Below are positions 3,460 through 61,219 of a stretch of DNA of 64,000 nucleotides, in pieces. The stretch lies in the sequence record PQ066597.1. One strand, written 5' to 3'. Each line of letters begins with the position of its first letter. Position 1 is the stretch's first letter. Position numbers and translations under genes: made by a program. The notes below the pieces were generated by a model, which made no database searches, was not told the origin of the DNA, and worked only from the letters and a program-made list of their open reading frames with translations.

Positions 3460-3481
3460 AATTTTTGATGAGAGCTATATT

Positions 3482-17303: not shown

Positions 17304-17572
17304 GGAATAAAAAGAAAACTCTCTTTTTGGTTAATAAAAACGGTTCCATCATTGATATAGATTGGATTTTTCTTTTCTTTATCTTCAATATCACAAACCG
17401 CGATTACGTTTTCATCATCATCGATGTGAAATACAATGAATCCATTCTTAAGAATTTCATAATTATAAAAATTACGTTCACAACTGGTGCGATATTCTTG
17501 AGCCGCTTCGACAGACCGAAAACGGTAAATGGTATCAAAGTTCATACGTGGGTATTGATCATTTGGATACAC
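17291..17572 (-). CDS. divergent GoF-like hypothetical protein
   Basis: YRFRSVEA..EY...N pattern; start may be ATG 17545. Confidence 0.55.
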   Translation of the reverse strand: MYPNDQYPRMNFDTIYRFRSVEAAQEYRTSCERNFYNYEILKNGFIVFHIDDDENVIAVCDIEDKEKKNPIYINDGTVFINQKESFLFIPCRC

Positions 17573-27912: not shown

Positions 27913-28313
27913 TCGTTGTTTTCGTGATAAATCGAGTCTGATTCACGGAAGAATACCGGAAGATCATTGAATTCTTGAACAAGATTTTCTGCGACCATCT
28001 TCATGATCTTGATACCTTCTTGGTTATGACCAATAGAGATGTAAACCTTATCACCCTCATAAACAAATCCATCGATTTCCTCTTTCTGAGAAACGGTACA
28101 CATAAACATGCTTCGTTTTCCGCTATCTGAATCAAAGACAATGGAAAAGCTTTGGAAGTCGTAAGAATGAATTGTTGCAATACAACCACCAACAACTTTT
28201 TGTTTTGCGTGAACCCGTTGAACAAGCTTATGAACAACGTGGCCGATGTTGGTGATGTTCATGTTGTGGTTGCTGATGTCAACAAAAATAGAAGTACATA
28301 CGCTCATAATCAA
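27894..28313 (-). CDS. hypothetical protein
   Basis: ORF track. Confidence 0.65.
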   Translation of the reverse strand: MIMSVCTSIFVDISNHNMNITNIGHVVHKLVQRVHAKQKVVGGCIATIHSYDFQSFSIVFDSDSGKRSMFMCTVSQKEEIDGFVYEGDKVYISIGHNQEGIKIMKMVAENLVQEFNDLPVFFRESDSIYHENNEWVQVK

Positions 28314-32613: not shown

Positions 32614-33099
32614 TTATTCCTCAAGATTAATATAAAAATTTGATGGTGTGATATGAGAACCAATCGACTTAAGTTCTTTGTAAATATCACGTTCTCGAAT
32701 CTTAAGTTGTTTGATCTCTTTTGTCAACATACTTTCTTTACTTTTAATATGACTACGAGTGAATTTATCCTTGATGTACTCAGATACTTCTGGGTCATTC
32801 ATAGCCCATTCCATCATCATAGTCTTTGTAAATTCAGGTTGTCCACCCAAAATAATTTCTTCTGAATCAAGAAAAGATTCCATCTCGGTTTTGGTAAATG
32901 GCATTCTGTACCCCGGATGATAATTCACGGTTTTTCGATCTTCACTAATGACAACCGGTCGAAATAATTCATCCTCTTCAATAGTAAACCATTTGGGGTA
33001 TTCACATACGGAAATGATACTATTGTACAAATCATCGTTATTGTTGATGACAAACAAATCCCAAGTGGCTTGACTTTTAAACTTATATTTCTTTTTCAT
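32614..33099 (-). CDS. GoF-like N-terminal domain plus coiled coil
   Basis: KYKFKSQAT..LF...N pattern. Confidence 0.55.
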   Translation of the reverse strand: MKKKYKFKSQATWDLFVINNNDDLYNSIISVCEYPKWFTIEEDELFRPVVISEDRKTVNYHPGYRMPFTKTEMESFLDSEEIILGGQPEFTKTMMMEWAMNDPEVSEYIKDKFTRSHIKSKESMLTKEIKQLKIRERDIYKELKSIGSHITPSNFYINLEE

Positions 33100-44712: not shown

Positions 44713-45006
44713 TCACTCCACGTAATCGATACAGCACTTCAACACACGAACCAACTCAGCTTCACTAGTCGGATCTTCAAAGTCAACTGAATCATAGCAA
44801 AATTCTTCTACGATAACAATAGAATGAATACCACGAACCAACGCAAAATCACGCGCTACCTTTTCCAACTCACGGCCTTTGATAACCATCATAGCATTGT
44901 TATCAAGATACATACCAAAAACAGAAGTAATACCATAACCGCGAGAGTTCAACAAAGTTTTCATTTCAGCAGCAATTTCACGAATGTTTTTCATATCTAT
45001 CTCCAA
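44713..45006 (-). CDS. hypothetical protein
   Basis: ORF track. Confidence 0.65.
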   Translation of the reverse strand: MEIDMKNIREIAAEMKTLLNSRGYGITSVFGMYLDNNAMMVIKGRELEKVARDFALVRGIHSIVIVEEFCYDSVDFEDPTSEAELVRVLKCCIDYVE

Positions 45007-45104
45007 TCAGTCAGTAAGAACATGGTACTACATCACCTAATGTATGTCCACACTTTTTTGTTCTAGAATCAAACTTTTTAATTTAAGAACCAAACATTAT
45101 CAAA

Positions 45105-45164
45105 ATATGAAAGAATGTTAACAGATATGAAAAGTTATGAAAAAATGTGAAAGAATATTAACAG
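45105..45164. repeat. six tandem degenerate 10-bp AT-rich repeats (iteron-like)
   Basis: ATATGAAAGA ATGTTAACAG ATATGAAAAG TTATGAAAAA ATGTGAAAGA ATATTAACAG. Confidence 0.7.
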
Positions 45165-45251
45165 AATCCCTTATACCACAAGGGATAGAGAGAAAATGTT
45201 TTAAAATGGTGTATAAAAGAAAATGCACCAAAAAAGTGCATTTTACCCCTC

Positions 45252-45605
45252 TCATGATCGTTTGATGATTCGATTGTATATTTTGGATGCTTCTCGATAG
45301 TAAAGCGCCAAACTACGTTCGTATTCAGCTTTCTTTTCTTGTACATCATTCCATAGAGCTTCTACACCCTCAATGGACATGGTAGTGTCTTCAATAACAT
45401 CAAAATACTTCATTTCACTTTTACGAATAAAAGCATAACAGTAATCAACCCTCAATAGTTCACCATCCTTAGAGAGGAAATAATCATCACCATCTAAGAT
45501 TACTTCATGTGGTTCATTACCAATATGGTTTTCGATAACTTTGTTAAACCGCTCAATCTGGCGGAACTCATGACGGGACTGTTCGTCTTTAAACTTAATC
45601 TTCAT
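45252..45605 (-). CDS. GoF/ComC-alpha-like protein with KKAEY tail
   Basis: Start ATG 45605 MKIKFKDEQSRHEF; ORF-track 5' extension overlaps the neighbour. Confidence 0.7.
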   Translation of the reverse strand: MKIKFKDEQSRHEFRQIERFNKVIENHIGNEPHEVILDGDDYFLSKDGELLRVDYCYAFIRKSEMKYFDVIEDTTMSIEGVEALWNDVQEKKAEYERSLALYYREASKIYNRIIKRS

Positions 45606-45855
45606 AATGCATCTCCAAATATTGAGTTTCATCTTCAAAGAAGCAAGCATTCCATCCATTATCCGGAACAGCTTTACCATACGTATTGAGAGTAATATTA
45701 TTCCCTTTACTATCCACGAGTTCGATGCTTCCATCAAAGCACGATTGAGCTTCATGGAAATCGTTACCCATGTATTCTGCGATGGACATATTAGCTCGTC
45801 CACCAGTGGTAAACGCATATTTGGATTCGATATTTTTAAATCTCACTTTCATCAA
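45595..45855 (-). CDS. GoF/ComC-alpha-like protein
   Basis: MKVRFKN...AN..IAEYMG. Confidence 0.7.
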   Translation of the reverse strand: MMKVRFKNIESKYAFTTGGRANMSIAEYMGNDFHEAQSCFDGSIELVDSKGNNITLNTYGKAVPDNGWNACFFEDETQYLEMHYED

Positions 45856-46207
45856 GCTTCTCCATCACTGCTTTGTTGTATTCAGTCATAGCATCATCAT
45901 ACTCTGCTTTCTTCTGTTGTGCGATATCCCAGAGTTCTTTGATAGATTTTTTCTTTTCTACCGGGAGAATATCCCATTCGAAAAATTGGTATTCAGATGG
46001 GTGAATGGATGGGGCTACATCAATACCATCAATAACCACATCCTCATTGTTCTCATCCACCAGAGACCAACGACGACCATTGAAGGATACACGATTCCAG
46101 CCCATACCCATATGGTTTGCGATGTGGGTGTTTGCGTGTACACTGCGGGATACAAAATGTTCTTTGTCCTCTTCACTGAGGAAACGAATACGCATAATAT
46201 CTGTCAT
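45836..46207 (-). CDS. GoF/ComC-alpha-like protein with KKAEY tail
   Basis: MRIRFLSEE...AN..IANHMGM. Confidence 0.7.
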   Translation of the reverse strand: MTDIMRIRFLSEEDKEHFVSRSVHANTHIANHMGMGWNRVSFNGRRWSLVDENNEDVVIDGIDVAPSIHPSEYQFFEWDILPVEKKKSIKELWDIAQQKKAEYDDAMTEYNKAVMEKLDESEI

Positions 46208-46210
46208 GAT

Positions 46211-46486
46211 TTATTCTCCTTTACTATTTTGGATGGGAGAGAAATCTACTTTCCCATCAATGTACACGTTGAGAATACCTGAATCGTCCTCGTAAGTAAA
46301 GGCTAGATTTGAGCTGGTATTTGCAACTTTCATTTTTACTTTGTGTCCGGTAGAGGAAAGATTCTCAATAGGGACAAATAGGTTATGTTGTGGATTAGCG
46401 TAACCTTTATCAACGAATGAGTAATAGATAGACTTAATGGTTTGAGTCTCACCCAGAAGTGGTTCGATGAAAGATGTAGTATCCAT
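46211..46486 (-). CDS. hypothetical protein, paralog of 55737-55952
   Basis: YY.FVDKGYANPQ.NLF...EDxSGIL.VY. Confidence 0.7.
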   Translation of the reverse strand: MDTTSFIEPLLGETQTIKSIYYSFVDKGYANPQHNLFVPIENLSSTGHKVKMKVANTSSNLAFTYEDDSGILNVYIDGKVDFSPIQNSKGE

Positions 46487-46547
46487 TTAAATTCCCCTTA
46501 CCTAAGATTTTTGACAAGTCCCAATATACAGATAACCGTCTCAACGG

Positions 46548-46844
46548 TCAACTGTTTTCTTTAACCGATTGGATATAGTCGTTGAAAGCCTTGTCGTATT
46601 CAGCCTTCTTTTCTAACATGATATCGAAAAGGGTTTTGGGATCATCTTCAATCCAATCAAAGAAATCGTGTTCGGATTCAAGGATAACAGTATACCCCGG
46701 TTTGGTTCCGCTTATAAAATAATACATACCACTTTTGATAACTTTGTGTGTATCCATCCCCATATATTCCGCAAGTTCGTAGTTCTCACTTCCCATAGCA
46801 CGAAACTTGCGCATATGTTGTTCTGACTTGAAACGGATCTTCAT
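46548..46844 (-). CDS. GoF/ComC-alpha-like protein with KKAEY tail
   Basis: MKIRFKSEQHMRKF...N..LAEYMGM. Confidence 0.7.
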   Translation of the reverse strand: MKIRFKSEQHMRKFRAMGSENYELAEYMGMDTHKVIKSGMYYFISGTKPGYTVILESEHDFFDWIEDDPKTLFDIMLEKKAEYDKAFNDYIQSVKENS

Positions 46845-46847
46845 ATC

Positions 46848-47096
46848 TTATTCCCCTTCAATAACAAAGTAACGACGCTCACCCTTATGGATAACCGCAT
46901 TCCACCCTTCAAACCCAGAGATATATGGATCTGGAATAGTGATACCACAATTATTATCATCTATCAGCCCAATATCCCCGCTACAATAATTGTATGCTTC
47001 GTGTGTATCCATTCCCATATAGTTTGCAATAGCAACGTTAGCACGACAATTGGAGAAGTCCTGATGGGCTTGTTCATCTTTAAAACGAATCTTCAT
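46848..47096 (-). CDS. GoF/ComC-alpha-like protein
   Basis: MKIRFKDEQAHQDF...AN..IANYMGM. Confidence 0.7.
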   Translation of the reverse strand: MKIRFKDEQAHQDFSNCRANVAIANYMGMDTHEAYNYCSGDIGLIDDNNCGITIPDPYISGFEGWNAVIHKGERRYFVIEGE

Positions 47097-47099
47097 AAT

Positions 47100-47315
47100 T
47101 TATTCCTCAACAATAGTGAAGTAATGGCTTTCGTCTTCAATTTGGATAGTGAAATCTCCATCAATAGTATCCCAGAAATCACCGGTATCGTCAATCTCTA
47201 CTTTGAAGGTTTTCATACCAAAATTCTTAACCATGTTGTGGTTGTGGCGGTGGAAAGACGGATCCCGTTTAGAAAACTCTTCCATGGCTTTTTCATCTTT
47301 AAAACGAATTTTCAT
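47100..47315 (-). CDS. GoF/ComC-alpha-like protein
   Basis: MKIRFKDEKAMEEF...N..MVKNFGMKTFKV. Confidence 0.7.
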   Translation of the reverse strand: MKIRFKDEKAMEEFSKRDPSFHRHNHNMVKNFGMKTFKVEIDDTGDFWDTIDGDFTIQIEDESHYFTIVEE

Positions 47316-47555
47316 TTACTTAATCTCCACCAGACGCCACGGGATCATACCAATGGTGTAGAAGCACCAAGACATTGAGCTATCTTGGATATTGTAGATA
47401 GTACCATCATCCATTTCAATCACCGTAATCCCTTCGGTATATCCAGATTTGAGGGTTTCTTTTACTGTGAAATAGTTACCAACTACCATCAACGGAAACT
47501 CTGATTTCATGATAGGGCTTACTTCTTCGATGATTTTGAATTTCTTGTTCAGCAT
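47316..47555 (-). CDS. Pin-like SH3-type domain protein
   Basis: FP..VVG.YFTV.E...GI..IEMDDG..YNI....WCF, like the N-terminal domain of T4 Pin. Confidence 0.6.
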   Translation of the reverse strand: MLNKKFKIIEEVSPIMKSEFPLMVVGNYFTVKETLKSGYTEGITVIEMDDGTIYNIQDSSMSWCFYTIGMIPWRLVEIK

Positions 47556-47769
47556 ATCTTTATTCCTCTAATAGTTGGCGAACAGTATTCACCCCTTGAA
47601 TTCAATTCCGAAATCTCTCTTTAGTGCTACAATAGCCTTGCGCCTTACCTCACTAGTTGAACCACTTCGTGCTAATGATTCAAGGCCAATGATTCGTGAG
47701 TTTGCTGGATGACGGCCTTGGTCCCAGACGCTTTTTATGCTCGGAATGTGATTGGTCTTTGACACTAAA

Positions 47770-48012
47770 TTATTCCTCAATGATAAAGAACTGTTGTTCA
47801 CCTTGATGTACCTGTGCTTCCCACTGGTCAAATTCACCAACAGTGATTGGGTCGCCGTTAACGTCTACCAGAGCAATGATGGTCTTACCACACTCTTCAT
47901 ACGAAATGGCGTCATGGGTATCCATACCCATATAGTCTGCAATTGCCGCGTTTGCATCGATCTTGCACATGAATTCGTATTGAGCGTCGGTATCTTTAAA
48001 ATGGATTTTCAT
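47770..48012 (-). CDS. GoF/ComC-alpha-like protein
   Basis: MKIHFKDTDAQYEF...AN..IADYMGM. Confidence 0.7.
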   Translation of the reverse strand: MKIHFKDTDAQYEFMCKIDANAAIADYMGMDTHDAISYEECGKTIIALVDVNGDPITVGEFDQWEAQVHQGEQQFFIIEE

Positions 48013-48021
48013 AATAGCTCC

Positions 48022-48258
48022 TTAATGAACCAGAGTTTTTGCTTTCTTGGTGATGATGGTAACGGCCTTGTGACCGTTCTTGCGAACACCACGACCAACA
48101 GACAGGGTTTTGTTTCCAGTAGAGTTCACATCGACAGTACGAGCCCAGCGATTAGTGGCCTGAGTACCATTGTCAGTCATTTTACCAAAACCAGCAACAC
48201 GAGCAGCGGAACGAGTGGCGAAGAAGATTTGTGCAGTCATGATGATTTCCTTTTTCAA
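48022..48258 (-). CDS. small basic early protein (F-x-TRSAAR...K..D.G...NRW)
   Basis: ORF track; early promoter TTGACT-N17-GATACT upstream. Confidence 0.7.
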   Translation of the reverse strand: MKKEIIMTAQIFFATRSAARVAGFGKMTDNGTQATNRWARTVDVNSTGNKTLSVGRGVRKNGHKAVTIITKKAKTLVH

Positions 48259-48311
48259 GAGAGGGTTTCTGTCTACGGGATTAGTATCTCAAAACATGAT
48301 TTCTAAGTCAA

Positions 48312-48572
48312 TCAGTTTTTCAAAAGATTTTTGATTTCTTCCATCTCATCTTTCAGATCGCTAATCCAGTATTGAGCAGGGAAGCAATTCAGGAACTCCA
48401 TATAAGCCCGGATAACTTCGATACACTCTTCCACATCACCGAGATAAATCATTTCGCAAGCCCAGTCATAATCGACACCACAAACGGTTTGAGCTGCATC
48501 ATACACTTCATCAGTGATATTGTTCTCTGCAACGTTGATAACTTTCTTGGCAAGGGAAGCGACGTAGTTCAT
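48312..48572 (-). CDS. hypothetical acidic protein
   Basis: ORF track; early promoter upstream. Confidence 0.7.
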   Translation of the reverse strand: MNYVASLAKKVINVAENNITDEVYDAAQTVCGVDYDWACEMIYLGDVEECIEVIRAYMEFLNCFPAQYWISDLKDEMEEIKNLLKN

Positions 48573-48608
48573 GGCAATTTCCTTTTCTTCCTCAGTGGGT
48601 ATATGTGT

Positions 48609-48636
48609 ATATTACCAGATCACCAAATGGAGTCAA
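48609..48636 (-). promoter_or_regulatory. early promoter
   Basis: TTGACT-N16-TAATAT with TCTGG before the -10. Confidence 0.7.
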
Positions 48637-49119
48637 TCAATTCCGAAAAAGATTTTCCATTTCTTGTACTGACAAACCAGCTTTATTAGCAACTTCCTGT
48701 TTCTTGATCCGCTTATCGATTTGAGATTTTACCGATTCATCCATCTTGACCTCGCTGATGGACACATAAAGCTCACCATCAATACGAGTAAATGGAACTT
48801 CCACCATCGGGGTTTTGTTGGTGATGGAATAGTGTTCTGCAACCTTCTCGTCTGTGGTTGTAACAGCTCCATATTCATTAGCAATCAACCAAGCTTTTCC
48901 ATCAGATTCACCAACTTCAAAATAATGAACACTTTCAATAATGGTCAGATAGTCAGCACCAAACGAGTAATCCCGTGTGTAATAACCATCATATTTCAAT
49001 TCCTTCTGCCAATTAGCACCATTCTCAATGGCATCGATAACTTTCTTACCCCATTCAGTCAATCCAAAACGAGAAATGAATTTGGAGCGGATAATAGGTG
49101 ATTTGAATTTCAGTTTCAT
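48637..49119 (-). CDS. hypothetical protein, GoF-like start
   Basis: MKLKFKS; AAGGA RBS. Confidence 0.6.
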   Translation of the reverse strand: MKLKFKSPIIRSKFISRFGLTEWGKKVIDAIENGANWQKELKYDGYYTRDYSFGADYLTIIESVHYFEVGESDGKAWLIANEYGAVTTTDEKVAEHYSITNKTPMVEVPFTRIDGELYVSISEVKMDESVKSQIDKRIKKQEVANKAGLSVQEMENLFRN

Positions 49120-49128
49120 ATTGATTCC

Positions 49129-49422
49129 TTACTTGGAAGCGTAATAAATTGCAGCTCGGAGATTTACCAGAGCCATATCAAGGTGGATACCAATCAGATC
49201 ATCCTCATAAGAATCACCACGGTCAAAAACAGTTTTTGCATCATCGATATTACGAATGGCGGAATCAATATAACCCCGGATCTCATCCTCACCCATAGGA
49301 ACAGCGATGTAGATGTTGGAGAGGGTATTCATGTTATCAACATAATCCCAGTCAGAAACATCAAATTTCTTGGACAAACATTTAACGGATTCGAAAGCTT
49401 CACGCAAGTAAGAAACGTTCAT
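49129..49422 (-). CDS. hypothetical protein, paralog of 26367-26684
   Basis: Start ATG 49422 after GGAGA; DMALVNLRAA. Confidence 0.7.
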   Translation of the reverse strand: MNVSYLREAFESVKCLSKKFDVSDWDYVDNMNTLSNIYIAVPMGEDEIRGYIDSAIRNIDDAKTVFDRGDSYEDDLIGIHLDMALVNLRAAIYYASK

Positions 49423-49432
49423 AATATTCTCC

Positions 49433-49723
49433 TTAGACTTCAACACGAACAACAGTATAACCGTAACCAAGATAACCCAGCTCTGTTTGCATCACATCAG
49501 CTCGGCGTTGGGCTTCATCACGCGCTTTTCCATCATATTCATCGGTAGACTCTACGTGGACCGAAACAACATAGTCAGAACTATCCGGGCCGTTTTCCAG
49601 TACCGCATATGCGTTGCGATAAACCAGACCTTGACGCTTTTTGGATTTTGCTTCTTCCAGCTTGATAGTGATTGCATTCATCATTTCGTTTACCATAAGA
49701 ACCTCCCGTTTCGATATACACAT
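49433..49723 (-). CDS. hypothetical protein
   Basis: ORF track; likely start MVNEMM. Confidence 0.6.
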   Translation of the reverse strand: MCISKREVLMVNEMMNAITIKLEEAKSKKRQGLVYRNAYAVLENGPDSSDYVVSVHVESTDEYDGKARDEAQRRADVMQTELGYLGYGYTVVRVEV

Positions 49724-49769
49724 AGTAAAACAAATGACTCACCGAAGTAAGCCATTTTTCATTTTATTT

Positions 49770-49991
49770 TCAACCCAGAATCTTGCTGAAATCCATAATT
49801 TTCAGAAGTTCCACATACCCGGTTATTGACAAACCACACGTAAGAAAATGAAGAACATAGCAAAGAACTTTATCCAACATCCCACCTTTCCGCGTGTCAT
49901 TATAGGTTGCAACACCGTTGAACACGATACCACACAGGAACATAGTGGTGATGAGAACGAAACCAAGTTGGCTATTAATAAAATCCATCAT
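49770..49991 (-). CDS. membrane protein
   Basis: Two TM segments. Confidence 0.65.
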   Translation of the reverse strand: MMDFINSQLGFVLITTMFLCGIVFNGVATYNDTRKGGMLDKVLCYVLHFLTCGLSITGYVELLKIMDFSKILG

Positions 49992-50200
49992 ATAATTTCC
50001 TCTACCAGAATTTCACACTGTTCACCATAAAAAGCTTCTTTAGCAATTTTCTTACCGAAGTTCAAAGCCCCTTTATGAGTCTTGTAAACATCATAAGAAA
50101 TAGAACCGGTAGAGCCTTTAACAGTCACTTTGAAATCTTTCATGATACTTCCCTCGTGTTTTCCAACAAGGAAAGTATCCCATAAATCAATTACTATCAC
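49988..50200 (-). CDS. hypothetical protein
   Basis: ORF track; likely start MKDFKV. Confidence 0.55.
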   Translation of the reverse strand: MIVIDLWDTFLVGKHEGSIMKDFKVTVKGSTGSISYDVYKTHKGALNFGKKIAKEAFYGEQCEILVEEII

Positions 50201-50382
50201 AAGTGGTTTTTGAGAAAATTATACTCATCAGAGTTCAATTGCACATATGGAACTAGGTTACTATCAAGAGATAAAATTAACTCGATGATAGCCGACCGGT
50301 CGTGGTGTAATTCACCAATCTTTTCTGGCGTCATCCATTTCAACGACAGTTGGGCATTCTTTGTATCAATCAAAACCATCAT
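50197..50382 (-). CDS. hypothetical protein
   Basis: ORF track. Confidence 0.55.
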   Translation of the reverse strand: MMVLIDTKNAQLSLKWMTPEKIGELHHDRSAIIELILSLDSNLVPYVQLNSDEYNFLKNHL

Positions 50383-50391
50383 ACTATCCCC

Positions 50392-50814
50392 TTAGAAAGT
50401 GTTGTCTACATCATCATAATCGGTTGGGCTCCACATATCGTCATCATCTTCCCACCACTCCTGTTTCTTGGGGAGCGATTTAACGTGCTCAGACCAGCGT
50501 TTAGCAGCGTTGTAAGTGTAGAAGGTGCGATTAGTACCACCCGGATGACTACCATCAATACCAGCGTCAGTGAGGCTGAAATCATCATTAAAGAAGTCAT
50601 TCACTTCCCGAACAACACCGAATTTGTAACTACTGGTTTTGAACCACTTTCGATAGTTCACCCACAGAGTACCATTCAGTACAGAATCTTTTTTCTTGTA
50701 AGCGAACGGACGTGATGTGATAAGAATCTTAGTGATAGAACCAGTAGGGCCGCATACACGATATACAGTCTGACCAGCGCGGAGAGATTTTGCAGTTACT
50801 TTACCTTTAGCCAT
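50392..50814 (-). CDS. hypothetical protein
   Basis: ORF track; GGAG RBS. Confidence 0.7.
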   Translation of the reverse strand: MAKGKVTAKSLRAGQTVYRVCGPTGSITKILITSRPFAYKKKDSVLNGTLWVNYRKWFKTSSYKFGVVREVNDFFNDDFSLTDAGIDGSHPGGTNRTFYTYNAAKRWSEHVKSLPKKQEWWEDDDDMWSPTDYDDVDNTF

Positions 50815-51372
50815 GATTATTGCTCCTGATATACTTTGACCAAATTCATGAGGAACTTAATTTCCTCATCAGTGATATATGGTGTGGCTTCAATCCATTT
50901 ACCCAAAGCCACTAGTGCCATTCGATGACCATTAGATTTTATCAGATCACTGGTTTGTTTTGCAACTAGTTCTACAAGAATTTTATTTTTCATACTATCC
51001 CCTTAGATGGCAAGTTTTGCTTTAGCGTGATAAACGCCAACGTATTTTTCTTGGATCTTCTCGACTGCACATTTCGGGGTGTATGCCCAAACGTATTCAG
51101 TAAGGACTTTATCACCAAATGCATTTTGAATTTTGAAGGAAACGATAAAACTTTTCATAATACTCTCCATATCCCAGATTGAATGTTTTTGTAAAGGCCA
51201 CGAGCTGTTACCAGCATAACACGCCATTTGTTACCTTGACAATATTTTATCACAAGCCCGCGACGAGTTACCGACAGTGTACCAACCCAATGATATTCCC
51301 CACATTGGCTAGACCCAACACCATAGATAATACAAAGAAATATTACTCGGGTAAATGCGACCATGATATCCC

Positions 51373-51612
51373 TTAATAATTCTTAACAACGATATGAGAG
51401 ATGGAATCACCGTAAGTTTCCAGCGCTTGTTTGGTGTACATACGGCCTTTATTCTCTACACCATTTTCGGTGGTGATGCTCACATCAACAACAAAGTCCA
51501 TACCACCATTATCAAGCGCGGCCTTCATGGTAATGGTTCCGATTGTGGAAGTACAAACCAGAGTTTGATTACCAAGCATGTTATTCAGGCGATTGCGGAG
51601 TTTGGTGTTCAT
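51373..51612 (-). CDS. hypothetical protein
   Basis: ORF track; early promoter 51642-51669 upstream. Confidence 0.7.
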   Translation of the reverse strand: MNTKLRNRLNNMLGNQTLVCTSTIGTITMKAALDNGGMDFVVDVSITTENGVENKGRMYTKQALETYGDSISHIVVKNY

Positions 51613-51641
51613 GGTATTTCCTTCTCAGTTGGTGTACAGAC

Positions 51642-51669
51642 ATATTACCAGAACCATTTATCGAGTCAA
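51642..51669 (-). promoter_or_regulatory. early promoter
   Basis: TTGACT-N16-TAATAT with TCTGG. Confidence 0.7.
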
Positions 51670-51672
51670 ACG

Positions 51673-51996
51673 TTATTTGACAAATTCTTTGCTCAGACGG
51701 TAAATATTTTCTTCGTAATAGTTGTCACCATAAACACGGTCACGACCATAGTTGTATTTCTTCAAAGTGGGTTCTTTGACACTGAACTTGTGGTCAACAA
51801 TCAGAACACCGGCCTTAATGAGAGCGCGAACAGTAGCACGGTTAACAGCACCCAGACGGAAAGTCATCTCTTCTTTGGTCTTACCCTTGGGAGTGTTTTC
51901 CCAGCGAACCAAATCAACTTGATACTGGTTCCAAAGACGCTCAACTTCCGCAACACAAATAGCAACTACTTCGTTTTGGGCTTTGCTGAGTTTCAT
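51673..51996 (-). CDS. hypothetical protein
   Basis: ORF track; early promoter and conserved leader upstream. Confidence 0.75.
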   Translation of the reverse strand: MKLSKAQNEVVAICVAEVERLWNQYQVDLVRWENTPKGKTKEEMTFRLGAVNRATVRALIKAGVLIVDHKFSVKEPTLKKYNYGRDRVYGDNYYEENIYRLSKEFVK

Positions 51997-52004
51997 GATT
52001 TCTT

Positions 52005-52060
52005 CCTTTCCGTCTCTCGTTTCGATATGGATATAATACCAGAACTGGACTACGATGCAA
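52005..52060 (-). promoter_or_regulatory. early promoter plus conserved 31-bp leader (copy at 53111-53141)
   Basis: TTGCAT-N16-TATTAT; CCTTTCCGTCTCTCGTTTCGATATGGATATA repeated exactly. Confidence 0.75.
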
Positions 52061-52268
52061 CAACTATTTCAAAATATTTTCCTTCACCTTCTTTATGAAT
52101 AGTGAAATCACCATCTACTGTATCCCACCAAGATTCGGTAATATCAACCTCAACATCGAAAGGGTTCATACCATGACGACGAACCAGATCTTTATTATGG
52201 GAAGACCAACCAAGGTTGATATTTGCGAACTCGTTCATATGTGCTTCGGATTTGAATTTGATTTTCAT
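52050..52268 (-). CDS. GoF/ComC-alpha-like protein
   Basis: MKIKFKSEAHMNEF...N..LVRRHGMNPFDV. Confidence 0.7.
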   Translation of the reverse strand: MKIKFKSEAHMNEFANINLGWSSHNKDLVRRHGMNPFDVEVDITESWWDTVDGDFTIHKEGEGKYFEIVVAS

Positions 52269-52277
52269 AATAGATCC

Positions 52278-52505
52278 TTAAACATAAAGGGTTTTGATGT
52301 CAGAGCGATTTTTCATTTCTTCCACTTGTGAATCTGCAACTCGCATGGTTTCATTTCTCGGATAGGAACAACTGAACGGAATGCATTCGTCAACCAAGTA
52401 ATCCATAACCTTTTTCTTGGCCTTAGAAGGATCCATAGCAGAGACCAGAAAGCTTTCCATACCGTTAACAGTTTTCATCACAACAATATAATTAAAGAAG
52501 TTCAT
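52278..52505 (-). CDS. hypothetical protein
   Basis: Start ATG 52505 downstream of promoter 52537-52564. Confidence 0.65.
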   Translation of the reverse strand: MNFFNYIVVMKTVNGMESFLVSAMDPSKAKKKVMDYLVDECIPFSCSYPRNETMRVADSQVEEMKNRSDIKTLYV

Positions 52506-52700
52506 GTTAATTCCCTCGGCTAATTTCGATATGGATATCTTACCAGAACAGATCACTGAGTCAACCAATAATTTCAGCGGAACCACAATTAACACGAACT
52601 ATCATATCCGACAAACTTGACATACAGGGTTCACCAGATTCATAAACCCCATATTCCCCAGTGAAAGTGATGATGTCGTTACCGTCTTTGATTTTCATGA

Positions 52701-53102
52701 TTAACCCCTTTGAACTTTAGCAACGTTTTTCTTGAACTCTTCAACATTCTTTTCCATCAACTCAACAAAAGCAACCGGTGCCTTGCGAGCTTTAGCAGCA
52801 TCAAGCTGGTCTTCCAGATCAAACAGCTCACGAGTGACGTAGAGTTGAGCAATGGTTAGGGTGTATTTGTCGGCCTGTTCGTCAGTCATATCAGCAACAA
52901 CACCATAGTTCCGACCATTGGCGATATCAACACCGTGCTCAGGACGGAAGTGGTTACCGAGCATTGCACCAGTCTCTGGATGACACAGGGTCATTTGCTT
53001 CTTACCACAGGATTTCACAACAGCTCGGAACCAAGAGAAGGTGCCTTTACCGTCTACGCTTGCAACCTGAATAACAACCTGACCTTTGGTGAATGCTTTC
53101 AT
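52701..53102 (-). CDS. hypothetical protein
   Basis: Start ATG 53102 downstream of the conserved leader. Confidence 0.75.
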   Translation of the reverse strand: MKAFTKGQVVIQVASVDGKGTFSWFRAVVKSCGKKQMTLCHPETGAMLGNHFRPEHGVDIANGRNYGVVADMTDEQADKYTLTIAQLYVTRELFDLEDQLDAAKARKAPVAFVELMEKNVEEFKKNVAKVQRG

Positions 53103-53171
53103 GATTTTTCCCTTTCCGTCTCTCGTTTCGATATGGATATAGTAGCACAACCAGTTTTCAAAACAACTAAT

Positions 53172-53699
53172 TTATCGGTATATCTTCAACAAATCTCCAT
53201 TCCAGTTTCTCATTTTGCTGCTGTCTCGTTCCGCACGGAGTTCACACTGGCGATTGTGATAAGCTCGAACTTCTTGATTATGCATATCCAGTTCCAGATT
53301 TGCAACACGCACCAGAGTAGAAAGAGTCGAGTCCGGAATAGTACACTCTTTACGTGCGTTATCCATATGGTTTTCGTAAAGGTCATCAAACGGGATATCG
53401 CAGTAGCCATTAGCTACATTACTAATATTGGCATAGTGTCCTGCTACGGATTTCATATGGCGATTGACTTCATATGAACTATTACTCTGTAGTAGCCAAC
53501 ATTTGTTAACAGGGTCGAAAACAATCATATTGCTTGAATGACGATCCGAATAATGAATCTGCTGTTCAGATGTTTTGTTCAACCAAGACCAACATTGGGC
53601 AGGAACATTACCAATACGATCAGGGAATTTCTGGTTTACATAGTCACATGCGATAGCAATATCAACCGGATGAGACAATCGAAAACACCAATACTTCAT
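53172..53699 (-). CDS. hypothetical protein
   Basis: ORF track. Confidence 0.65.
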   Translation of the reverse strand: MKYWCFRLSHPVDIAIACDYVNQKFPDRIGNVPAQCWSWLNKTSEQQIHYSDRHSSNMIVFDPVNKCWLLQSNSSYEVNRHMKSVAGHYANISNVANGYCDIPFDDLYENHMDNARKECTIPDSTLSTLVRVANLELDMHNQEVRAYHNRQCELRAERDSSKMRNWNGDLLKIYR

Positions 53700-53712
53700 A
53701 GCTTATATCCTT

Positions 53713-53934
53713 TTATTTCAGAACGAATTTAACGATTTCATAATCGTCTGGTTTGATGTATGTGTATATGTCATCATTACTATTAGCTAGCGCATCCTTT
53801 ACATCGTTGATGTTGGATTCTGTATAGGGAAACAAAGCGGTATCGGTATCATCCACCAAATAAGTGCAATCACCACACACATCCAGTTGAGCCAACTTAC
53901 CAGTCTTCTTATGTTTTAACGCATAGAGAATCAT
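53713..53934 (-). CDS. hypothetical protein, paralog of 53987-54214
   Basis: YALK.K.TGK.A...VCG...YLVDD. Confidence 0.7.
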   Translation of the reverse strand: MILYALKHKKTGKLAQLDVCGDCTYLVDDTDTALFPYTESNINDVKDALANSNDDIYTYIKPDDYEIVKFVLK

Positions 53935-53986
53935 ATTTTATCCTTGATTGAAAGTAACAACAATTCCCATTTTACAAAATCATCTT

Positions 53987-54214
53987 CTAAATTTGAATTT
54001 CCACGATATCGTATTGTTCTGGATCGATTTGGACAAACAGATTGTCGTTGACACCATCCAACGTATCTTGAATTTTCTGTGAGGTGGTTTCGGTGTAGAC
54101 AAAAGCAACTGCATGGTCTCCAATTGCTTCATCATCTACCAAATAAACAGCTTCACCACACACCTCTACCATAGCAACTTTACCAGTATATTTGTTTTTC
54201 AGTGCATAGAACAT
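53987..54214 (-). CDS. hypothetical protein, paralog of 53713-53934
   Basis: YALK.K.TGK.A...VCG...YLVDD. Confidence 0.7.
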   Translation of the reverse strand: MFYALKNKYTGKVAMVEVCGEAVYLVDDEAIGDHAVAFVYTETTSQKIQDTLDGVNDNLFVQIDPEQYDIVEIQI

Positions 54215-54217
54215 ATT

Positions 54218-54442
54218 TTATCCTTGGTTGAAAGTAACAACAATTTCCATCTCATGTAACGCCTTACCATACAGCTCGATAGCGTTATAACCGGTTGGGT
54301 CAAAATGTACTAACCCTTCAACGTCAAAATGATTACCGAAGAAAACAAATTCTACTTTTGCATTTGGATCTCGTTCTTGGAGAATCTTAATCAAATCACA
54401 ATTTTTCAAACTTAATTTCTCCCACCAGAGATTCAGAAACAC
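54218..54442 (-). CDS. hypothetical protein
   Basis: ORF track; start uncertain. Confidence 0.5.
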   Translation of the reverse strand: MFLNLWWEKLSLKNCDLIKILQERDPNAKVEFVFFGNHFDVEGLVHFDPTGYNAIELYGKALHEMEIVVTFNQG

Positions 54443-54626
54443 GGTCGTAAATCATAATTGTTTTTGCGTTGTATGGGCTATCGAGAGAATCCACTAGTTT
54501 CAACCAGCAAGGGAAATCAGCTTCTTCATAATAGGTATAACTCTCTTCCCATGGACCGATAGTAGCAACAAAATCGCCACGGGTTTCGAACCAAACATAT
54601 CCCAGAGCTTCCATAATCTTTTTCAT
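54396..54626 (-). CDS. hypothetical protein
   Basis: ORF track. Confidence 0.65.
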   Translation of the reverse strand: MKKIMEALGYVWFETRGDFVATIGPWEESYTYYEEADFPCWLKLVDSLDSPYNAKTIMIYDRVSESLVGEIKFEKL

Positions 54627-54629
54627 ATC

Positions 54630-54911
54630 TTATTCCTCAAACAGCCAGTTGCGAACTTGGTCACGCATAACCCCGTACATGTATTTGGTCATTTCATCAG
54701 CAGCGATATCATTATCACATGCATCATAATCGATGACCCGACCGAAGAAGTTGCGGAGAGCAATACACTGAGAATTGCACAACTCTTGTCCTTCCATCAT
54801 ATCGCGAAATGCGCGAGACTCAGGGGAAATTGTCAGAGCGATACGACTGTCGTGATAAGCCTTGATGCGGTTGATTAGTTCGGCTTGGTGGTCGGTAAAA
54901 AGAATTTTCAT
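54630..54911 (-). CDS. hypothetical protein
   Basis: ORF track; early promoter 54942-54969 upstream. Confidence 0.7.
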   Translation of the reverse strand: MKILFTDHQAELINRIKAYHDSRIALTISPESRAFRDMMEGQELCNSQCIALRNFFGRVIDYDACDNDIAADEMTKYMYGVMRDQVRNWLFEE

Positions 54912-54941
54912 TTCAATTTCCTCATCAGTGGGTACATAGGT

Positions 54942-54969
54942 ATATTACCAGAACTAGCTATAGAGTCAA
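54942..54969 (-). promoter_or_regulatory. early promoter
   Basis: TTGACT-N16-TAATAT with TCTGG. Confidence 0.7.
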
Positions 54970-55205
54970 AGACTTTTTGAAATTATTTTAGCCATCAGAC
55001 AAGTAAGAATGTTCGTTTGACAAATCCAAAACAATACCACCGGGTTTGTTCCATATTTCAGGGTAATCGTGGTGGTGCAGACTACTAGAACGATAGTAAA
55101 GACCATGAGAATATAAGATAGAATCACATCACGATTGATCTTTTCCCCTAGCTGGACAATGAAGTATATCGGAGCATAACAAGATAATGCTACCAAAGAA
55201 ATCAT
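54966..55205 (-). CDS. membrane protein
   Basis: Hydrophobic throughout. Confidence 0.55.
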   Translation of the reverse strand: MISLVALSCYAPIYFIVQLGEKINRDVILSYILMVFTIVLVVCTTTITLKYGTNPVVLFWICQTNILTCLMAKIISKSL

Positions 55206-55206
55206 A

Positions 55207-55593
55207 TCAAACCTCCGGCTTATTTTTGCGATGGTTTTCCAGAGCTTCGATCAACTCCTTCTCTTTCTTCTCCCAATTTGCCAACAACAAAGCTTTCTTT
55301 TCTTCCATCTCCTTTTCTTTCTTCTTCAAATTGGCAACCATCAGCTCATTCTTTTCTTCGTCTGAGAGGTTTTCAACTGGGACAAGATATTCTTTTACCA
55401 TATCTTCTGTGTAGAAGCACCAACACCAAGGATATGAGTCGATGTTATATTCAGTTCCACTATCCATGATGATGGATATGATACCGGGTCCGTCCGTCTC
55501 TGTTACCGTGAAAGAAGAACCCAACACAAGTTCGGGAAATTCTTTGTGGAAATCTTCAAAATCTTTTTTTACAGTATAACGTTGGTTCAGCAT
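55207..55593 (-). CDS. Pin-like SH3-type domain plus coiled coil
   Basis: FPELVLGSSFTV.E...GII.I.MDSG..YNI...WCWCF. Confidence 0.65.
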   Translation of the reverse strand: MLNQRYTVKKDFEDFHKEFPELVLGSSFTVTETDGPGIISIIMDSGTEYNIDSYPWCWCFYTEDMVKEYLVPVENLSDEEKNELMVANLKKKEKEMEEKKALLLANWEKKEKELIEALENHRKNKPEV

Positions 55594-55736
55594 AATATCT
55601 CCTTAACCGTTCAACATCGGGATGATAACGAAAAGAACAACACCAACAATACCAGCACAGATCAAAGTCTCTTTGTGCTTGGTGATTTGGAACTTAGCGC
55701 GTTTCATAGCAAATTCAAAGTTGGTCATGTCATTCC

Positions 55737-55952
55737 TTAGATAGATACTTTGGGGATAAAATCGTAATCCGCCCCACCACGGTATACATAGAGTATACCA
55801 GAACCATCCTCAAACTTGCAATAGGTTCCGTCAAGTTTAGTATGTGGTGTGTACACAACGTTCGGGATCTTACTAACTGGGTCAAACAGATTTGACTGTG
55901 GGTTTGCATAACCTTTGTCAACGAAAGCATAGTAAGTGGTTTCGATATCCAT
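55737..55952 (-). CDS. hypothetical protein, paralog of 46211-46486
   Basis: YYAFVDKGYANPQSNLF. Confidence 0.7.
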   Translation of the reverse strand: MDIETTYYAFVDKGYANPQSNLFDPVSKIPNVVYTPHTKLDGTYCKFEDGSGILYVYRGGADYDFIPKVSI

Positions 55953-56069
55953 AAATTTATCCTCGGTTTGTTTTGGAAAGAAGGAAAGTACCAGTTTGTC
56001 CTTCTTTCATCTCTCGTTTCAACAAGGATAGAATAACAAAACGCTTACCCGAGAGCAAGCGTTTTTGAA

Positions 56070-56282
56070 TTATTTTTCCAAAATTTCGAAAAAATGGGAT
56101 TCGTCGGAGATGTTGATGGTGTAGCAAAGTACCCCTTTCCCATTAAAAATATCCCACCATTCTTCATCTACAAATCCAACAGGGATGGGGTTCATTCCAT
56201 ACGCATCCACGAGTTCTTTGTTGTTGCGATCTATCGTCGCATACACATTCATAGCTTCTTCTGATTTAAAACGGACTTTCAT
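56070..56282 (-). CDS. GoF/ComC-alpha-like protein
   Basis: MKVRFKSEEAMN.Y...N..LV..YGMNP. Confidence 0.7.
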   Translation of the reverse strand: MKVRFKSEEAMNVYATIDRNNKELVDAYGMNPIPVGFVDEEWWDIFNGKGVLCYTINISDESHFFEILEK

Positions 56283-56291
56283 AATTTTTCC

Positions 56292-56501
56292 TTAAATGTT
56301 GGTTAAAAAGTAATGATGTTCGAATTGTGGGAAGACGAATTCAATATCCCCATTCTCATCTAGATAGTCCCACCAAGCACAATCTGGATCTGTATCTACC
56401 TCAAATGGGCTCATACCAAAACGTTCTACCACAAGCTTGTTATGACGGTCTTTTTCACCATATTCGTTCATGGCTTTTTCTGACACAAAACGGACTTTCA
56501 T
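56292..56501 (-). CDS. GoF/ComC-alpha-like protein
   Basis: MKVRFVSEKAMNEY...N..VVERFGMSPFEV. Confidence 0.7.
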   Translation of the reverse strand: MKVRFVSEKAMNEYGEKDRHNKLVVERFGMSPFEVDTDPDCAWWDYLDENGDIEFVFPQFEHHYFLTNI

Positions 56502-56510
56502 AATTTTTCC

Positions 56511-56834
56511 TTATTCTACTTTGAAAGTAACAACAATCGCACTACCCATAGAACCATTCCATTCTACCTTGGTGTCTTCTATGGAACCAATCTTTTCTAC
56601 CAGATCAATTACATTCTCTTTTGGTTGGTTGTACTTGAAGTCGATATACATTTTGTGATATCCGGTTTCTTCAACTGTACGATACATTGCATAGTTGTAC
56701 TCGCGGTATGCATCAGTCAAATCGGTTTTACGGAAGATAGCAATCTTTGCTGTATCCACCTTGCGAATGGCCTTGCGAAGTTTAACCACTTCACGATGAG
56801 CCTTGTTAGATGTTTCTGTGATAAATTCTGTCAT
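56511..56834 (-). CDS. hypothetical protein
   Basis: ORF track; promoter 56867-56895 upstream. Confidence 0.7.
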   Translation of the reverse strand: MTEFITETSNKAHREVVKLRKAIRKVDTAKIAIFRKTDLTDAYREYNYAMYRTVEETGYHKMYIDFKYNQPKENVIDLVEKIGSIEDTKVEWNGSMGSAIVVTFKVE

Positions 56835-56866
56835 GGTAATTTCCTCTTCTTTGTTTCAACATAGAT

Positions 56867-56903
56867 AGGATAGCAAAGGGCTTGAACGATTACAAGCCCT
56901 TTT
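56867..56903 (-). promoter_or_regulatory. early promoter embedded in a terminator-like inverted repeat
   Basis: TTGTAA-N17-TATCCT within AAAGGGCTTG/CAAGCCCTTT. Confidence 0.65.
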
Positions 56904-56907
56904 TAAA

Positions 56908-57144
56908 TTATCCTCTTATCTTCATCAAGAAACGGTCTTCGTCAAATGGAGATACAACATACCGCCAACCAAAACAATCTGGATAACGATTATAGATGAT
57001 TTCTTCAACTTTGTTCTCAGAAGATTCCAACCATTCCCAATTTTCATCAGAATTGTTTTCTTTTACAGCTTTATTTGCTTCGTCAGACTCTTTCAACAGA
57101 ACAAACAGCGGGTCATTACTTACCACTTCAAAATATTGATTCAT
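56908..57144 (-). CDS. hypothetical protein
   Basis: ORF track. Confidence 0.65.
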   Translation of the reverse strand: MNQYFEVVSNDPLFVLLKESDEANKAVKENNSDENWEWLESSENKVEEIIYNRYPDCFGWRYVVSPFDEDRFLMKIRG

Positions 57145-58222: not shown

Positions 58223-59785
58223 TCATTTATAAAGATGATCTAAGATTACCTTAGCCATTTGGTCTTTGTCAAGCTTAATCAACTTGTTGTAAAGTCGTTT
58301 ACCAACTTCTATTTCAGGAGTGTATCCTTTCTCCCTGATCGTGTCAATCAGTTCTGGGAGAATTTTAATAATATCAATCCAGTTTTGAAGGATTTCTGTC
58401 GTACCATCAGCAAACTCGTCGGGTGTGATGATAGGATGCTCCATATCCTGTCTGTATGGCTTTGTGAGACGTTCCAGTTCTTGTGGGATAGAACCGTCCT
58501 CGAACTTGAATACAATTAGCTGGTGAGGCTTGTACGACGTTTTACGAGCTTGTTGTTTGATACGTTGATCTAAGAAGTTTGTGATACCTATTTTGAAAAA
58601 CTCGTTTGTATCTTTATCGTAGTTTGTCCAGTTGGTTACGTAAAGGTATCCGGGTTTCACTGGTCTATATCCATATTCCGCACAAGAAGGACAACCACGA
58701 TCACCATGAACAAGGTCATTATAAGAAATCTGATAATATCCGTGATGAGGACACCACAATTTTACTTTAGATTGTGCGTTTTTATATCCATTTGGTAGAC
58801 CCTCAAATTCATGACCTTCAAATTTTTCAGTTTTTAAAACAGATAGAATCTTGCCAACTGGGTCTTGTTCTTTCAGTTTATCTTTGGTTGATTCCACTCC
58901 ACAACTAGAGCACCCCTTACCACCATGAATTAAGTCAGAAAACCTAATATTATAGTATCCGTGATGAGGACACCACAATTTTACTTTAGATTGTATGTTT
59001 TTATATCCGTCGAGAATACCCCCAAATCTATGACCTTTATATTTTTCGTTTTCTGTTAAGTGACGTTCCACAAGAATACAAATTTGGAATTTTTCATACT
59101 TATGATTTTTTGCACATCCACAAGGGATATAACCCATTTCTAATTGATACTTTGTTGTTGTAAACGGCTCTGGGTATAAATCTTCGTCACTATTACAAAC
59201 CGAACAGTATATCTTAAAATGTAGTTTGTTATCTGCATAACCTAAACATTTGTGAGTTTTTAATGCTGTATTCTTTTTTAAAATCCGATTTATTAATACT
59301 ATATCCTGTTCTTCTGTCTTAGTTTTTGCCCTATTGGAACACCCACATGGAATCCGTCCAGACATTAAATGGCCTTTTGTTGTTGTAAAAGGATTGGGGT
59401 ATAATTCTTTATCATGGGAATGTATTGGACAATATATTGAAAATATTTCGTTACCACCGACAATAACACCAGTCGAACCTTCACATTTATGACCATACAA
59501 ACCAACAGTCGGTAATATTCTGTTGATCAAAATAATATTTTGTTTTTCTGTGTATCTTTTTCTAGAAGAACATCCACACGGTATTTGTTTCTTGTTTAGG
59601 TTTCCTTTTCTACTTTCAAACAGATGGGGGAACAATTCTAAATCGCGGGAGCATATTGAGCATGATAGTTTGTACATCTTTTTACTACCCTTCAACCCAT
59701 TGTCACCAACAACAGTCAACACCCCACCTTTCGGAGTAGGAAAAGTTTGTCCAATGAAATCATCTACAGGGTACTGACCACACAT
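58223..59785 (-). mobile_element. free-standing homing endonuclease (repeated Cys/His Zn modules plus C-terminal GIY-YIG-like domain)
   Basis: Repeats CS-x-C..D.ELY...PCGC and KVKLWCPHHGYY..DL.HG..GC..C; C-terminal GYLYV...FKIGITN...RI. Confidence 0.75.
58737..58994. repeat. 39-bp direct repeat inside the endonuclease gene
   Basis: TATCCGTGATGAGGACACCACAATTTTACTTTAGATTGT at 58737-58775 and 58956-58994. Confidence 0.85.
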
Positions 59786-60651: not shown

Positions 60652-60894
60652 TCACTTTACAATATATTTTACATTACATTCTTCAAACACACAACGATGA
60701 TAATAATCACTGAGGTTTACTTCAATCCATTCGGAAAGTGACGTATCCATATCTGGAATATCCCATGCATGAAGAACGTTGTCAATATATTTGAAACTAT
60801 CACTGTGTAGTTCGTCATCCCATTCCAATACCATAACGAATGCACCATTTTGGGGCATAGTATCAACTATTTTCATTTGGTAGTTCCCACACAA
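60652..60894 (-). CDS. hypothetical protein
   Basis: ORF track; likely start MKIVDT. Confidence 0.6.
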   Translation of the reverse strand: MCGNYQMKIVDTMPQNGAFVMVLEWDDELHSDSFKYIDNVLHAWDIPDMDTSLSEWIEVNLSDYYHRCVFEECNVKYIVK

Positions 60895-61063
60895 CGCAAA
60901 CTCGACCCATCTCTATGAAATCATGAGAATCCGTATAAAACCCATTTACATCAAAATCATAATAAATACCAAGAAAGAAACACCCACGAGAATCCTTAAA
61001 TAAATACTCTCGACCTTCCTCTAATTCATAATGGTTCGCCACTTTAAAAGACATGCGGATCAT
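60863..61063 (-). CDS. hypothetical protein
   Basis: ORF track. Confidence 0.6.
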   Translation of the reverse strand: MIRMSFKVANHYELEEGREYLFKDSRGCFFLGIYYDFDVNGFYTDSHDFIEMGRVCVVWELPNENS

Positions 61064-61219
61064 CCTTCTCAGAAACTAAGGATGGAACAAACCCATCTTC
61101 TGCCATTTTCTGAAAGACTCCACCCTGTGCGATGGTTTCTTTTAGACGTAGTTCAAAATACTCATCATCCATCTCCAACAACTCATAAAATGCCTTTTCC
61201 ATAGCTTCATCTTTTGACA

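Follow-up and report, generated by a model that had tools for sequence, protein, structure and literature searches.

A multicopy, apparently old family of small GoF-like proteins in a plastic region of Aeromonas phage vB_AdhaM_G2

Results

Ten copies of one domain in a block of small minus-strand genes

We analysed a stretch of 64,000 nucleotides from sequence record PQ066597.1 (hereafter the window), which is the final 64 kb of the 229,584-bp genome of Aeromonas phage vB_AdhaM_G2 (Ceceduovirus), and focus on a family of small genes resembling goF of phage T4 that lies between window positions 45252 and 56501. Window position 1 is record position 165585. Positions 45000-57000 match the record at 100% identity; identity is 98.4% to phage P19 and 84-93% to other members of Ceceduovirus (Straboviridae, Emmerichvirinae). 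The annotation of PQ066597 shows here a long minus-strand block of small open reading frames (ORFs), every one of them labelled 'hypothetical protein'.

An initial annotation of the window, made from the sequence alone, had placed ten of these ORFs in one family. All ten are present on the minus strand and belong together by profile scores and shared invariant residues. We call them G1 to G10. They have in common a domain of 70-85 residues with a conserved MK(I/V)(R/K)FK start and the invariant positions F5, N21, G29 and E61/64. All are matched by PHROG 2980 ('goF mRNA metabolism modulator') or PHROG 3089 (no function) at E-values of 1e-18 to 1e-30, and these profiles are independent of the alignment made in this analysis. 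Our own profile built from the ten copies scores its members at E <= 6e-26, while the next best of 861 window ORFs reaches E 0.22. A Pfam scan of the copies at E <= 0.1 gave chance-level matches alone, with no family and no LSM, and an Rfam scan of 44-58 kb returned no family.

By identity, the copies fall into three subgroups, and seven of the ten consist of the domain alone. The first subgroup comprises the stand-alone copies G6 (47100-47315, 71 aa; PHROG 2980 E 2.3e-19; absent in AS-zj), G8 (52050-52268, 72 aa; PHROG 2980 E 5.8e-26; with an ortholog in 5/5 Ceceduovirus relatives checked), G9 (56070-56282, 70 aa; PHROG 2980 E 1.6e-26) and G10 (56292-56501, 69 aa; PHROG 2980 E 2.5e-22; found only in AS-sw among five Ceceduovirus relatives). 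The second has a longer hairpin and contains the gene G2 (45595-45852, 85 aa; PHROG 3089 E 1e-29, PHROG 2980 E 1.4e-3), which overlaps the start of G1 by 11 nt, together with G5 (46848-47096, 82 aa; PHROG 3089 E 1.9e-28, PHROG 2980 E 2.8e-8) and G7 (47770-48012, 80 aa; PHROG 3089 E 3.4e-27). The third carries the KKAEY C-terminal tail, predicted to be helical in G1 and G3, that had been reported for three copies and is indeed present at 45252, 45836 and 46548: G1 (45252-45605, 117 aa; PHROG 2980 E 1.3e-19; an annotated coding sequence in PQ066597), G3 (45836-46207, 119-123 aa; PHROG 2980 E 4.3e-21) and G4 (46548-46844, 98 aa; PHROG 2980 E 1.8e-18). All ten proteins are acidic, with isoelectric points of 4.2-5.5 and net charges of -4 to -13.

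The family is already named (PHROG 2980); new here are its division into orthogroups, the estimates of constraint, the mosaic patches and the junctions between cassettes. In RefSeq the goF label is found on six CC2 genes within the 34 kb examined and on several genes in AS-sw and AS-zj, and the three copies of PHROG 3089 type remain annotated as hypothetical. Our literature search found no paper that describes a GoF-like expansion.

The copies resemble the N-terminal domain of T4 GoF

Profile comparison indicates that the ten copies are homologous to the N-terminal SH3/LSm-like domain of T4 GoF (sequence from NC_000866). Aligned by hhalign, a profile of 29 family members and a profile of 12 GoF orthologs matched with a probability of 90.1% (E 1.6e-6) over 72 columns, pairing G9 residues 3-70 with GoF residues 11-91. 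T4 GoF has its own family, PHROG 622, and matches PHROG 2980 as well (E 5.5e-6, residues 11-91). When the family profile was run against all six frames of the whole T4 genome, the sole match fell inside goF. The GoF likeness suggested in the initial annotation is thus upheld at the level of the whole domain. In the alignment, the invariant F, N, G-M and E of the family correspond to F13, N29, G37-M38 and E82 of GoF; of the two GoF suppressor sites, D25 precedes the invariant N by four residues and G84 follows the invariant E by two. The E..FF positions are likewise in common, and both GoF and the copies are acidic. MotB.1 has no detectable sequence similarity to the copies.

The resemblance ends with this domain. 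The GoF C-terminal domain has no counterpart in any copy, seven of which end with the barrel while three add a linker and a single long helix that does not align to that of GoF; the copies are therefore classed as members of a domain family and not as GoF orthologs. The KKAEY tail had been considered by eye as a homolog of the GoF C-terminal helix, and this was rejected, hhalign aligning the N-terminal domain alone. Since T4 GoF itself sits in PHROG 622, the goF name of PHROG 2980 was transferred by remote similarity. The two systems also differ in number, T4 having one GoF and vB_AdhaM_G2 at least ten copies per genome, and a genetic tie to Rho is known for GoF but not for the copies.

T4 GoF, also called ComC-alpha, is an abundant early protein of about 20,000 copies per cell that is non-essential in the laboratory, with an N-terminal domain (residues 1-91) whose fold is described as LSm-like (Kim et al. 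2025, PMC12152347). Wild-type GoF has no established function and its link to Rho is genetic only; only for the mutants D25Y and G84R are effects known, on the level of mRNA or on growth in rho mutants. GoF(D25Y) stabilises gene 41 RNA, which was interpreted as a gain of function, whereas wild-type GoF and MotB.1 had no clear RNA effect, and AlphaFold 3 gave no confident rings for GoF (PMC12152347). To describe T4 GoF as a single-copy modulator of Rho-dependent mRNA fate, as the initial annotation did, is thus an overstatement, because the function of the wild-type protein is unestablished and RNA stabilisation belongs to D25Y. Kim et al. treat GoF, along with MotB.1 and Frd.2, as three single-copy T4 genes and mention neither Aeromonas phages nor paralogs or duplication (PMC12152347).

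Structure prediction by AlphaFold2 with the family alignment confidently models the copies as small barrels of five strands and three helices. The G9 model (predicted local distance difference test, pLDDT, 96.1; predicted template modelling score, pTM, 0.82) runs strand, two helices, three strands, helix, strand, and the G3 model (pLDDT 85.5) has the same order of elements, after which a linker leads to a single long helix (residues 85-118). The predicted likeness to GoF comes from the profile alignment and the described fold. In BFVD, the neighbours of the model are small proteins of T4-like phages infecting Aeromonas, Escherichia, Morganella and Klebsiella, with template modelling scores up to 0.97; ESM Atlas matches are unnamed viral clusters only. 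Neighbours in the PDB are weak (Foldseek E >= 0.28; Z <= 4.0) and include SH3, InlB SH3-like, FeoA and ScaR/DtxR C-terminal domains and one LSm (Z 2.7); because these scores are so low, we give them no functional weight. The same weak PDB neighbours (FeoA, DtxR/ScaR C-terminal SH3-like, SH3, LSm) and a small five-stranded beta-barrel with helices characterise the GoF/MotB.1/Frd.2 fold family of T4, whose members are non-essential early accessory proteins of unestablished function; these are single-copy, whereas the family described here is multicopy.

The paralogs are diverged, maintained and shared across genera

Amino-acid identity among the ten copies is only 19-49%. In a maximum-likelihood tree of 64 rows, a separate, well-supported orthogroup spans the genus for each paralog, and members from the Ishigurovirus phages 65 or ZPAH1 are sister to several of these orthogroups, although the alignment is short and many deep forks are without resolution. 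This topology indicates that the duplications are older than the split between Ceceduovirus and Ishigurovirus, so that the expansion is old within Emmerichvirinae. Compared with its orthologs, every copy is under purifying selection, with ratios of non-synonymous to synonymous substitution (dN/dS) of 0.04-0.33. The low identity, the cross-genus orthogroups and the dN/dS values together argue for an old, maintained family and against recent amplification. One broken copy was seen among 53 orthologs: in AS-sw (L021, 10983-11571), the G1 ortholog is split into two frames.

Relatives nevertheless vary in their number of copies. Counted as strong matches in the plastic region, there are 10 copies in vB_AdhaM_G2, 9 in P19, 8 in each of Asswx_1, CC2 and AS-zj, and 10 in AS-sw, where the G1 ortholog is split; Ceceduovirus isolates thus range from 8 to 10. 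In Ishigurovirus, phage 65 has 12 matches and ZPAH1 has 9 at E <= 0.01, about 5-7 of them below E 1e-6. Profile matches elsewhere are few (one in T4, one in Aeh1, none in KVP40), and a word-index protein search returned close relatives in Aeromonas phages and a few metagenome contigs only.

Single copies are traded as one-gene cassettes

Two exact repeats that the initial annotation had pointed out at gene starts were confirmed: a 27-bp repeat at 56268-56294 and 56487-56513, and a 16-mer at 47075 and 47294 (previously placed near 47076 and 47295). Both consist of the stop, ribosome binding site (RBS) and start region and the first codons of adjoining copies, and they are located at cassette junctions. 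More specifically, the first copy of the 27-bp repeat (minus strand) holds the G10 stop, an RBS and the first codons of G9, and the second holds the stop of the upstream gene, an RBS and the first codons of G10.

Gene order near 56 kb differs between phages. In vB_AdhaM_G2 it is a 107-aa gene, G10 and G9; in P19 the 107-aa gene is followed by an unrelated 68-aa gene, in the place of G10, and a G9-like gene; in AS-sw the order is 68-aa gene, G9-like gene, 107-aa gene and G10. Joints were read from assembled contigs of relatives in four independent public sequencing runs (X1-X4), over a compared stretch of 5,501 letters. A contig of run X4 joins 56066 to 56292, which removes G9, and contigs of runs X1-X3 join 56294 to 56499, within the two copies of the 27-bp repeat, so that the body of G10 is removed or replaced. 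The joints of all four runs fall exactly on cassette borders, and the runs differ in cassette content. Single copies are thus gained, lost or replaced as one-gene cassettes at stop-RBS-start and PeSL-like repeats (the latter are described below). Where relatives differ in copy number, distinct old paralogs have been lost, gained or replaced, and no recently duplicated copy was found among 50,697 phage records and the contigs of the four runs.

Mosaic patches inside two copies

Exchange also occurs within the coding sequence. Across a 41-kb block (window 14250-55200), vB_AdhaM_G2 and P19 show 105 differences, 50 of which lie inside 135 nt of G4 (46680-46814, minus strand, codons 11-55). Nucleotides 1-33 of G4 and those from about nt 170 on are identical in the two phages, with roughly 50-60% identity in between. 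The patch allele has no other occurrence in the 50,697 phage records and a single place in its own genome. G9 carries a milder cluster of mismatches to P19 at 56124-56272. Both patches span helix 1 to strand 3; in these two copies the middle of the domain has been swapped, which leaves the gene a mosaic. Gene conversion by an adjacent paralog was considered as the origin of the G4 patch and rejected, since just about 20 nt resemble G5 and the allele has a single genomic place and no match elsewhere.

Promoter-like sites and PeSL-like repeats

Strict promoter-consensus matches number four, all on the minus strand and between 48.6 and 55 kb. One of them is an early-type promoter-like site at 48609-48636 (TTGACT, 16 nt, TG-TAATAT), upstream of the seven-copy cluster G1-G7; a terminator-like hairpin at 45220-45244 (minus strand) closes that cluster. 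Another terminator-like hairpin (56038-56065, minus strand) lies directly after G9 and is followed by a promoter-like repeat at 56005-56042, a PeSL-like arrangement, and a further hairpin is found at 49732-49757. The late-promoter motif TATAAATA does not occur between 24.5 and 64 kb. T4 GoF is an early protein; for the copies, the surrounding block offers early-type promoter-like sites and lacks a late-promoter motif.

Intergenic elements of 40-90 nt are repeated at 48577-48656, 51616-51680, 51991-52081, 52512-52573, 53097-53187, 54910-54989 and 56005-56042. They carry TTGACT, 16 nt and TG-TAATAT, then a Shine-Dalgarno (SD) sequence and start codon, and some are preceded by a hairpin. The repeat families D2, D4, D5, D8 and D9 combine the promoter-like motif with an SD, and indel junctions adjoin hairpins or repeats.

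PeSLs are defined by a stem-loop just upstream of a sigma-70-like promoter, followed by an SD and start codon; they are repeated and stand beside indels between close relatives (PMC4122927), and modular shuffling mediated by them has been described for hyperplastic regions of T4-like phages (PMC2839356, PMC4122927). We found no description of PeSL-like elements in Aeromonas phages in PMC4122927. The intergenic repeats appear to resemble PeSLs. As in PeSL shuffling, one-gene insertions, deletions and replacements separate close relatives, and junctions lie at repeated terminator, promoter and RBS sequences. The present case differs in that the cargo is repeatedly one protein family, that some junctions use the stop-RBS-start repeat alone, and that exchange also takes place within coding sequence, anchored by the conserved first 33 nt.

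Further and doubtful members

A six-frame scan of the whole record recovered the ten copies and three additional members, at record positions 27979-28188 (PHROG 2980 E 2e-20; hhalign 96%), 152022-152231 (PHROG 8464, the best family, and PHROG 2980; hhalign 90%) and 60877-61155 (PHROG 10023; PHROG 2980 E 2.5e-6).

The initial annotation had also listed four weaker copies, all on the minus strand, which fare unequally. Two are marginal and may be distant members: the ORF at 17291-17572 (93 aa) matches our broad profile over the whole domain at E 1.3e-3, with PHROG 8944 'goF' at E 6.6e-3, PHROG 622 at E 0.023 and a single-sequence hhalign probability of 3.9%, and the ORF at 17559-18140 (193 aa) likewise matches over the whole domain, but with its N-terminal part only (broad profile E 3.6e-3; PHROG 3089 E 0.025). 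For the ORF at 32614-33099 (161 aa), possibly another distant member, the link is indirect, through PHROG 8464 (E 7.1e-5), which T4 GoF also matches; against our own profiles (hhalign and broad profile) it gave no significant score. The ORF at 48637-49119 (160 aa) is a doubtful, unproven member: it has the MKLKFKS start and a YFEV motif, matches PHROG 26499 only, scores E 0.22 with the broad profile and 12% over 16 residues in hhalign, and has little in common with the family beyond the N-terminal motif.

Neighbouring genes

Other small gene families lie among the copies on the minus strand. Two paralogs of PHROG 14361 (no function), at 46211-46486 and 55737-55952, are each immediately downstream of a GoF-like copy, and since this holds in both clusters, the clusters look like sister segments; the copy at 55737 is absent in X3 and X4 contigs (joints of 55728 or 55731 to 56012). 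Two paralogs of a second family (47316-47555 and 55207-55593) also adjoin GoF-like copies and match PHROG 10788 at E 1e-36 and 2e-56; weaker matches, at E 3e-11 and 1e-9, are to PHROG 2167 'inhibitor of host Lon protease' (PinA-like). Inside the longer of this pair (55207-55593), a 54-nt sequence is repeated in tandem at 55252-55359 and codes for a K/E-rich stretch. In the 214 nt that separate G7 from the PinA-like gene (47556-47769), no gene is annotated; this segment is about 95% conserved in AS-zj, has no Rfam match and includes the tail of an unannotated frame (47589-47840) overlapping G7.

The 73- and 75-aa paralogs at 53713-53934 and 53987-54214 (minus strand) stand in tandem and are 70% identical over 80 nt, with a near-exact 39-nt repeat at the starts, and an X4 contig joint of 53931 to 54212, with 15 nt of shared sequence, deletes one of the two. 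Outside the small-ORF block, window positions 3062-3672 and 58658-59676 have no equivalent in the otherwise 98-99% identical P19 and are vB_AdhaM_G2-specific insertions or replacements.

Discussion

We consider it likely that these genes form an old, Emmerichvirinae-specific family of small acidic proteins built on the GoF N-terminal barrel, situated in a hyperplastic block of small ORFs with probable early, sigma-70-type transcription. Several points weigh against it. The homology to GoF is supported by E-values of 1e-5 to 1e-6 and by no strong score, and the PDB fold matches are weak and have no bearing on function. The promoter calls are consensus matches, and the scan total of 46 is no higher than that in shuffled sequence (37.6 +/- 7.1). 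Whole-gene dN/dS below 1 gives no positive sign of an arms race, and the mosaic patches are two cases that could be ordinary recombination with unsampled phages.

How such a family might work can be outlined. Each paralog would act as a binding module with a conserved core and face (F5, N21, G29-M30, E61 and the aromatic residue at 64-65), near which both T4 GoF suppressor sites (D25, G84) would lie, and the variable helix-loop and hairpin surface would set specificity. The copies were probably made early and kept by selection, members being traded between phages and the central segment occasionally exchanged. Binding of host proteins seems more likely than direct binding of RNA, given the acidity of all copies and the absence of RNA stabilisation by wild-type GoF; likely targets would be RNA-metabolism proteins or nuclease-type defences.

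A more far-reaching proposal, which we put forward only tentatively and think less than probable, is that the GoF barrel is an exchangeable specificity scaffold. The frame (strand 1 and the C-terminal strands) would anchor recombination, the part from helix 1 to strand 3 would be swapped as the target-recognition part, and whole genes would be traded as cassettes, giving each phage 8-13 binders that suit the defence systems, nucleases or RNA-metabolism proteins of its Aeromonas hosts and serve takeover of the host or counter-defence.

Direct RNA binding would give the family another role: in the manner of Hfq or LSm proteins, the copies would stabilise or remodel phage or host transcripts, with a separate set of RNAs for each paralog. 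The LSm-like fold described for the GoF N-terminal domain, the LSm domain among the weak PDB neighbours and the stabilisation of gene 41 RNA by GoF(D25Y) (PMC12152347) are in keeping with this. We nonetheless regard it as unlikely, given that D25Y is a gain of function and wild-type GoF and MotB.1 lack a clear RNA effect, that AlphaFold 3 gave no confident rings for GoF (PMC12152347), that no copy has a Pfam LSM match and that all ten are net negative.

It is very unlikely that the copies are passengers, a selfish or neutral cargo of regulatory cassettes prone to recombination, and persist by turnover and not by a function in infection. Their location in a hyperplastic region rich in PeSL-like repeats, the dispensability of several copies in one relative or another and the non-essentiality of T4 goF in the laboratory would all suit such cargo, but the dN/dS values indicate protein constraint, the orthogroups have been maintained across two genera, frames are intact save the G1 ortholog in AS-sw, and T4 GoF is made in large amounts.

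Poxvirus-type gene accordions, such as the amplification of K3L, are tandem arrays of one family in a large double-stranded DNA virus, with copy number differing among isolates. The array described here is alike in these respects, but it has no near-identical copies, its duplications appear ancient, and no within-population variation was seen in assembled contigs. The recent accordion proposed in the initial annotation (a selected tandem amplification, expanding and contracting fast, with copies now diversifying) is barely credible here: the copies stand in or nearly in tandem, gene starts are marked by short exact repeats and isolates differ in number, but the paralogs are far diverged and under purifying selection, each has its ortholog in further species of the genus, with Ishigurovirus sisters for several, number differences come from distinct old paralogs and never from near-identical duplicates, and neither the phage records nor the four runs hold a recent duplicate.

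For annotation, 'goF mRNA metabolism modulator' as a name for these genes overclaims, because only the N-terminal domain is in common and what wild-type GoF does is unestablished. For biology, GoF has been a puzzle since the 1970s, as an abundant early protein that the phage can do without in the laboratory and that is known through gain-of-function mutants alone. That a lineage retains at least ten diverged copies under purifying selection, and exchanges them as cassettes, shows the usefulness of the domain and suggests that it can be adapted to different targets. These phages are a natural panel of variants for pull-downs and defence-system screens, and could reveal what the domain binds.

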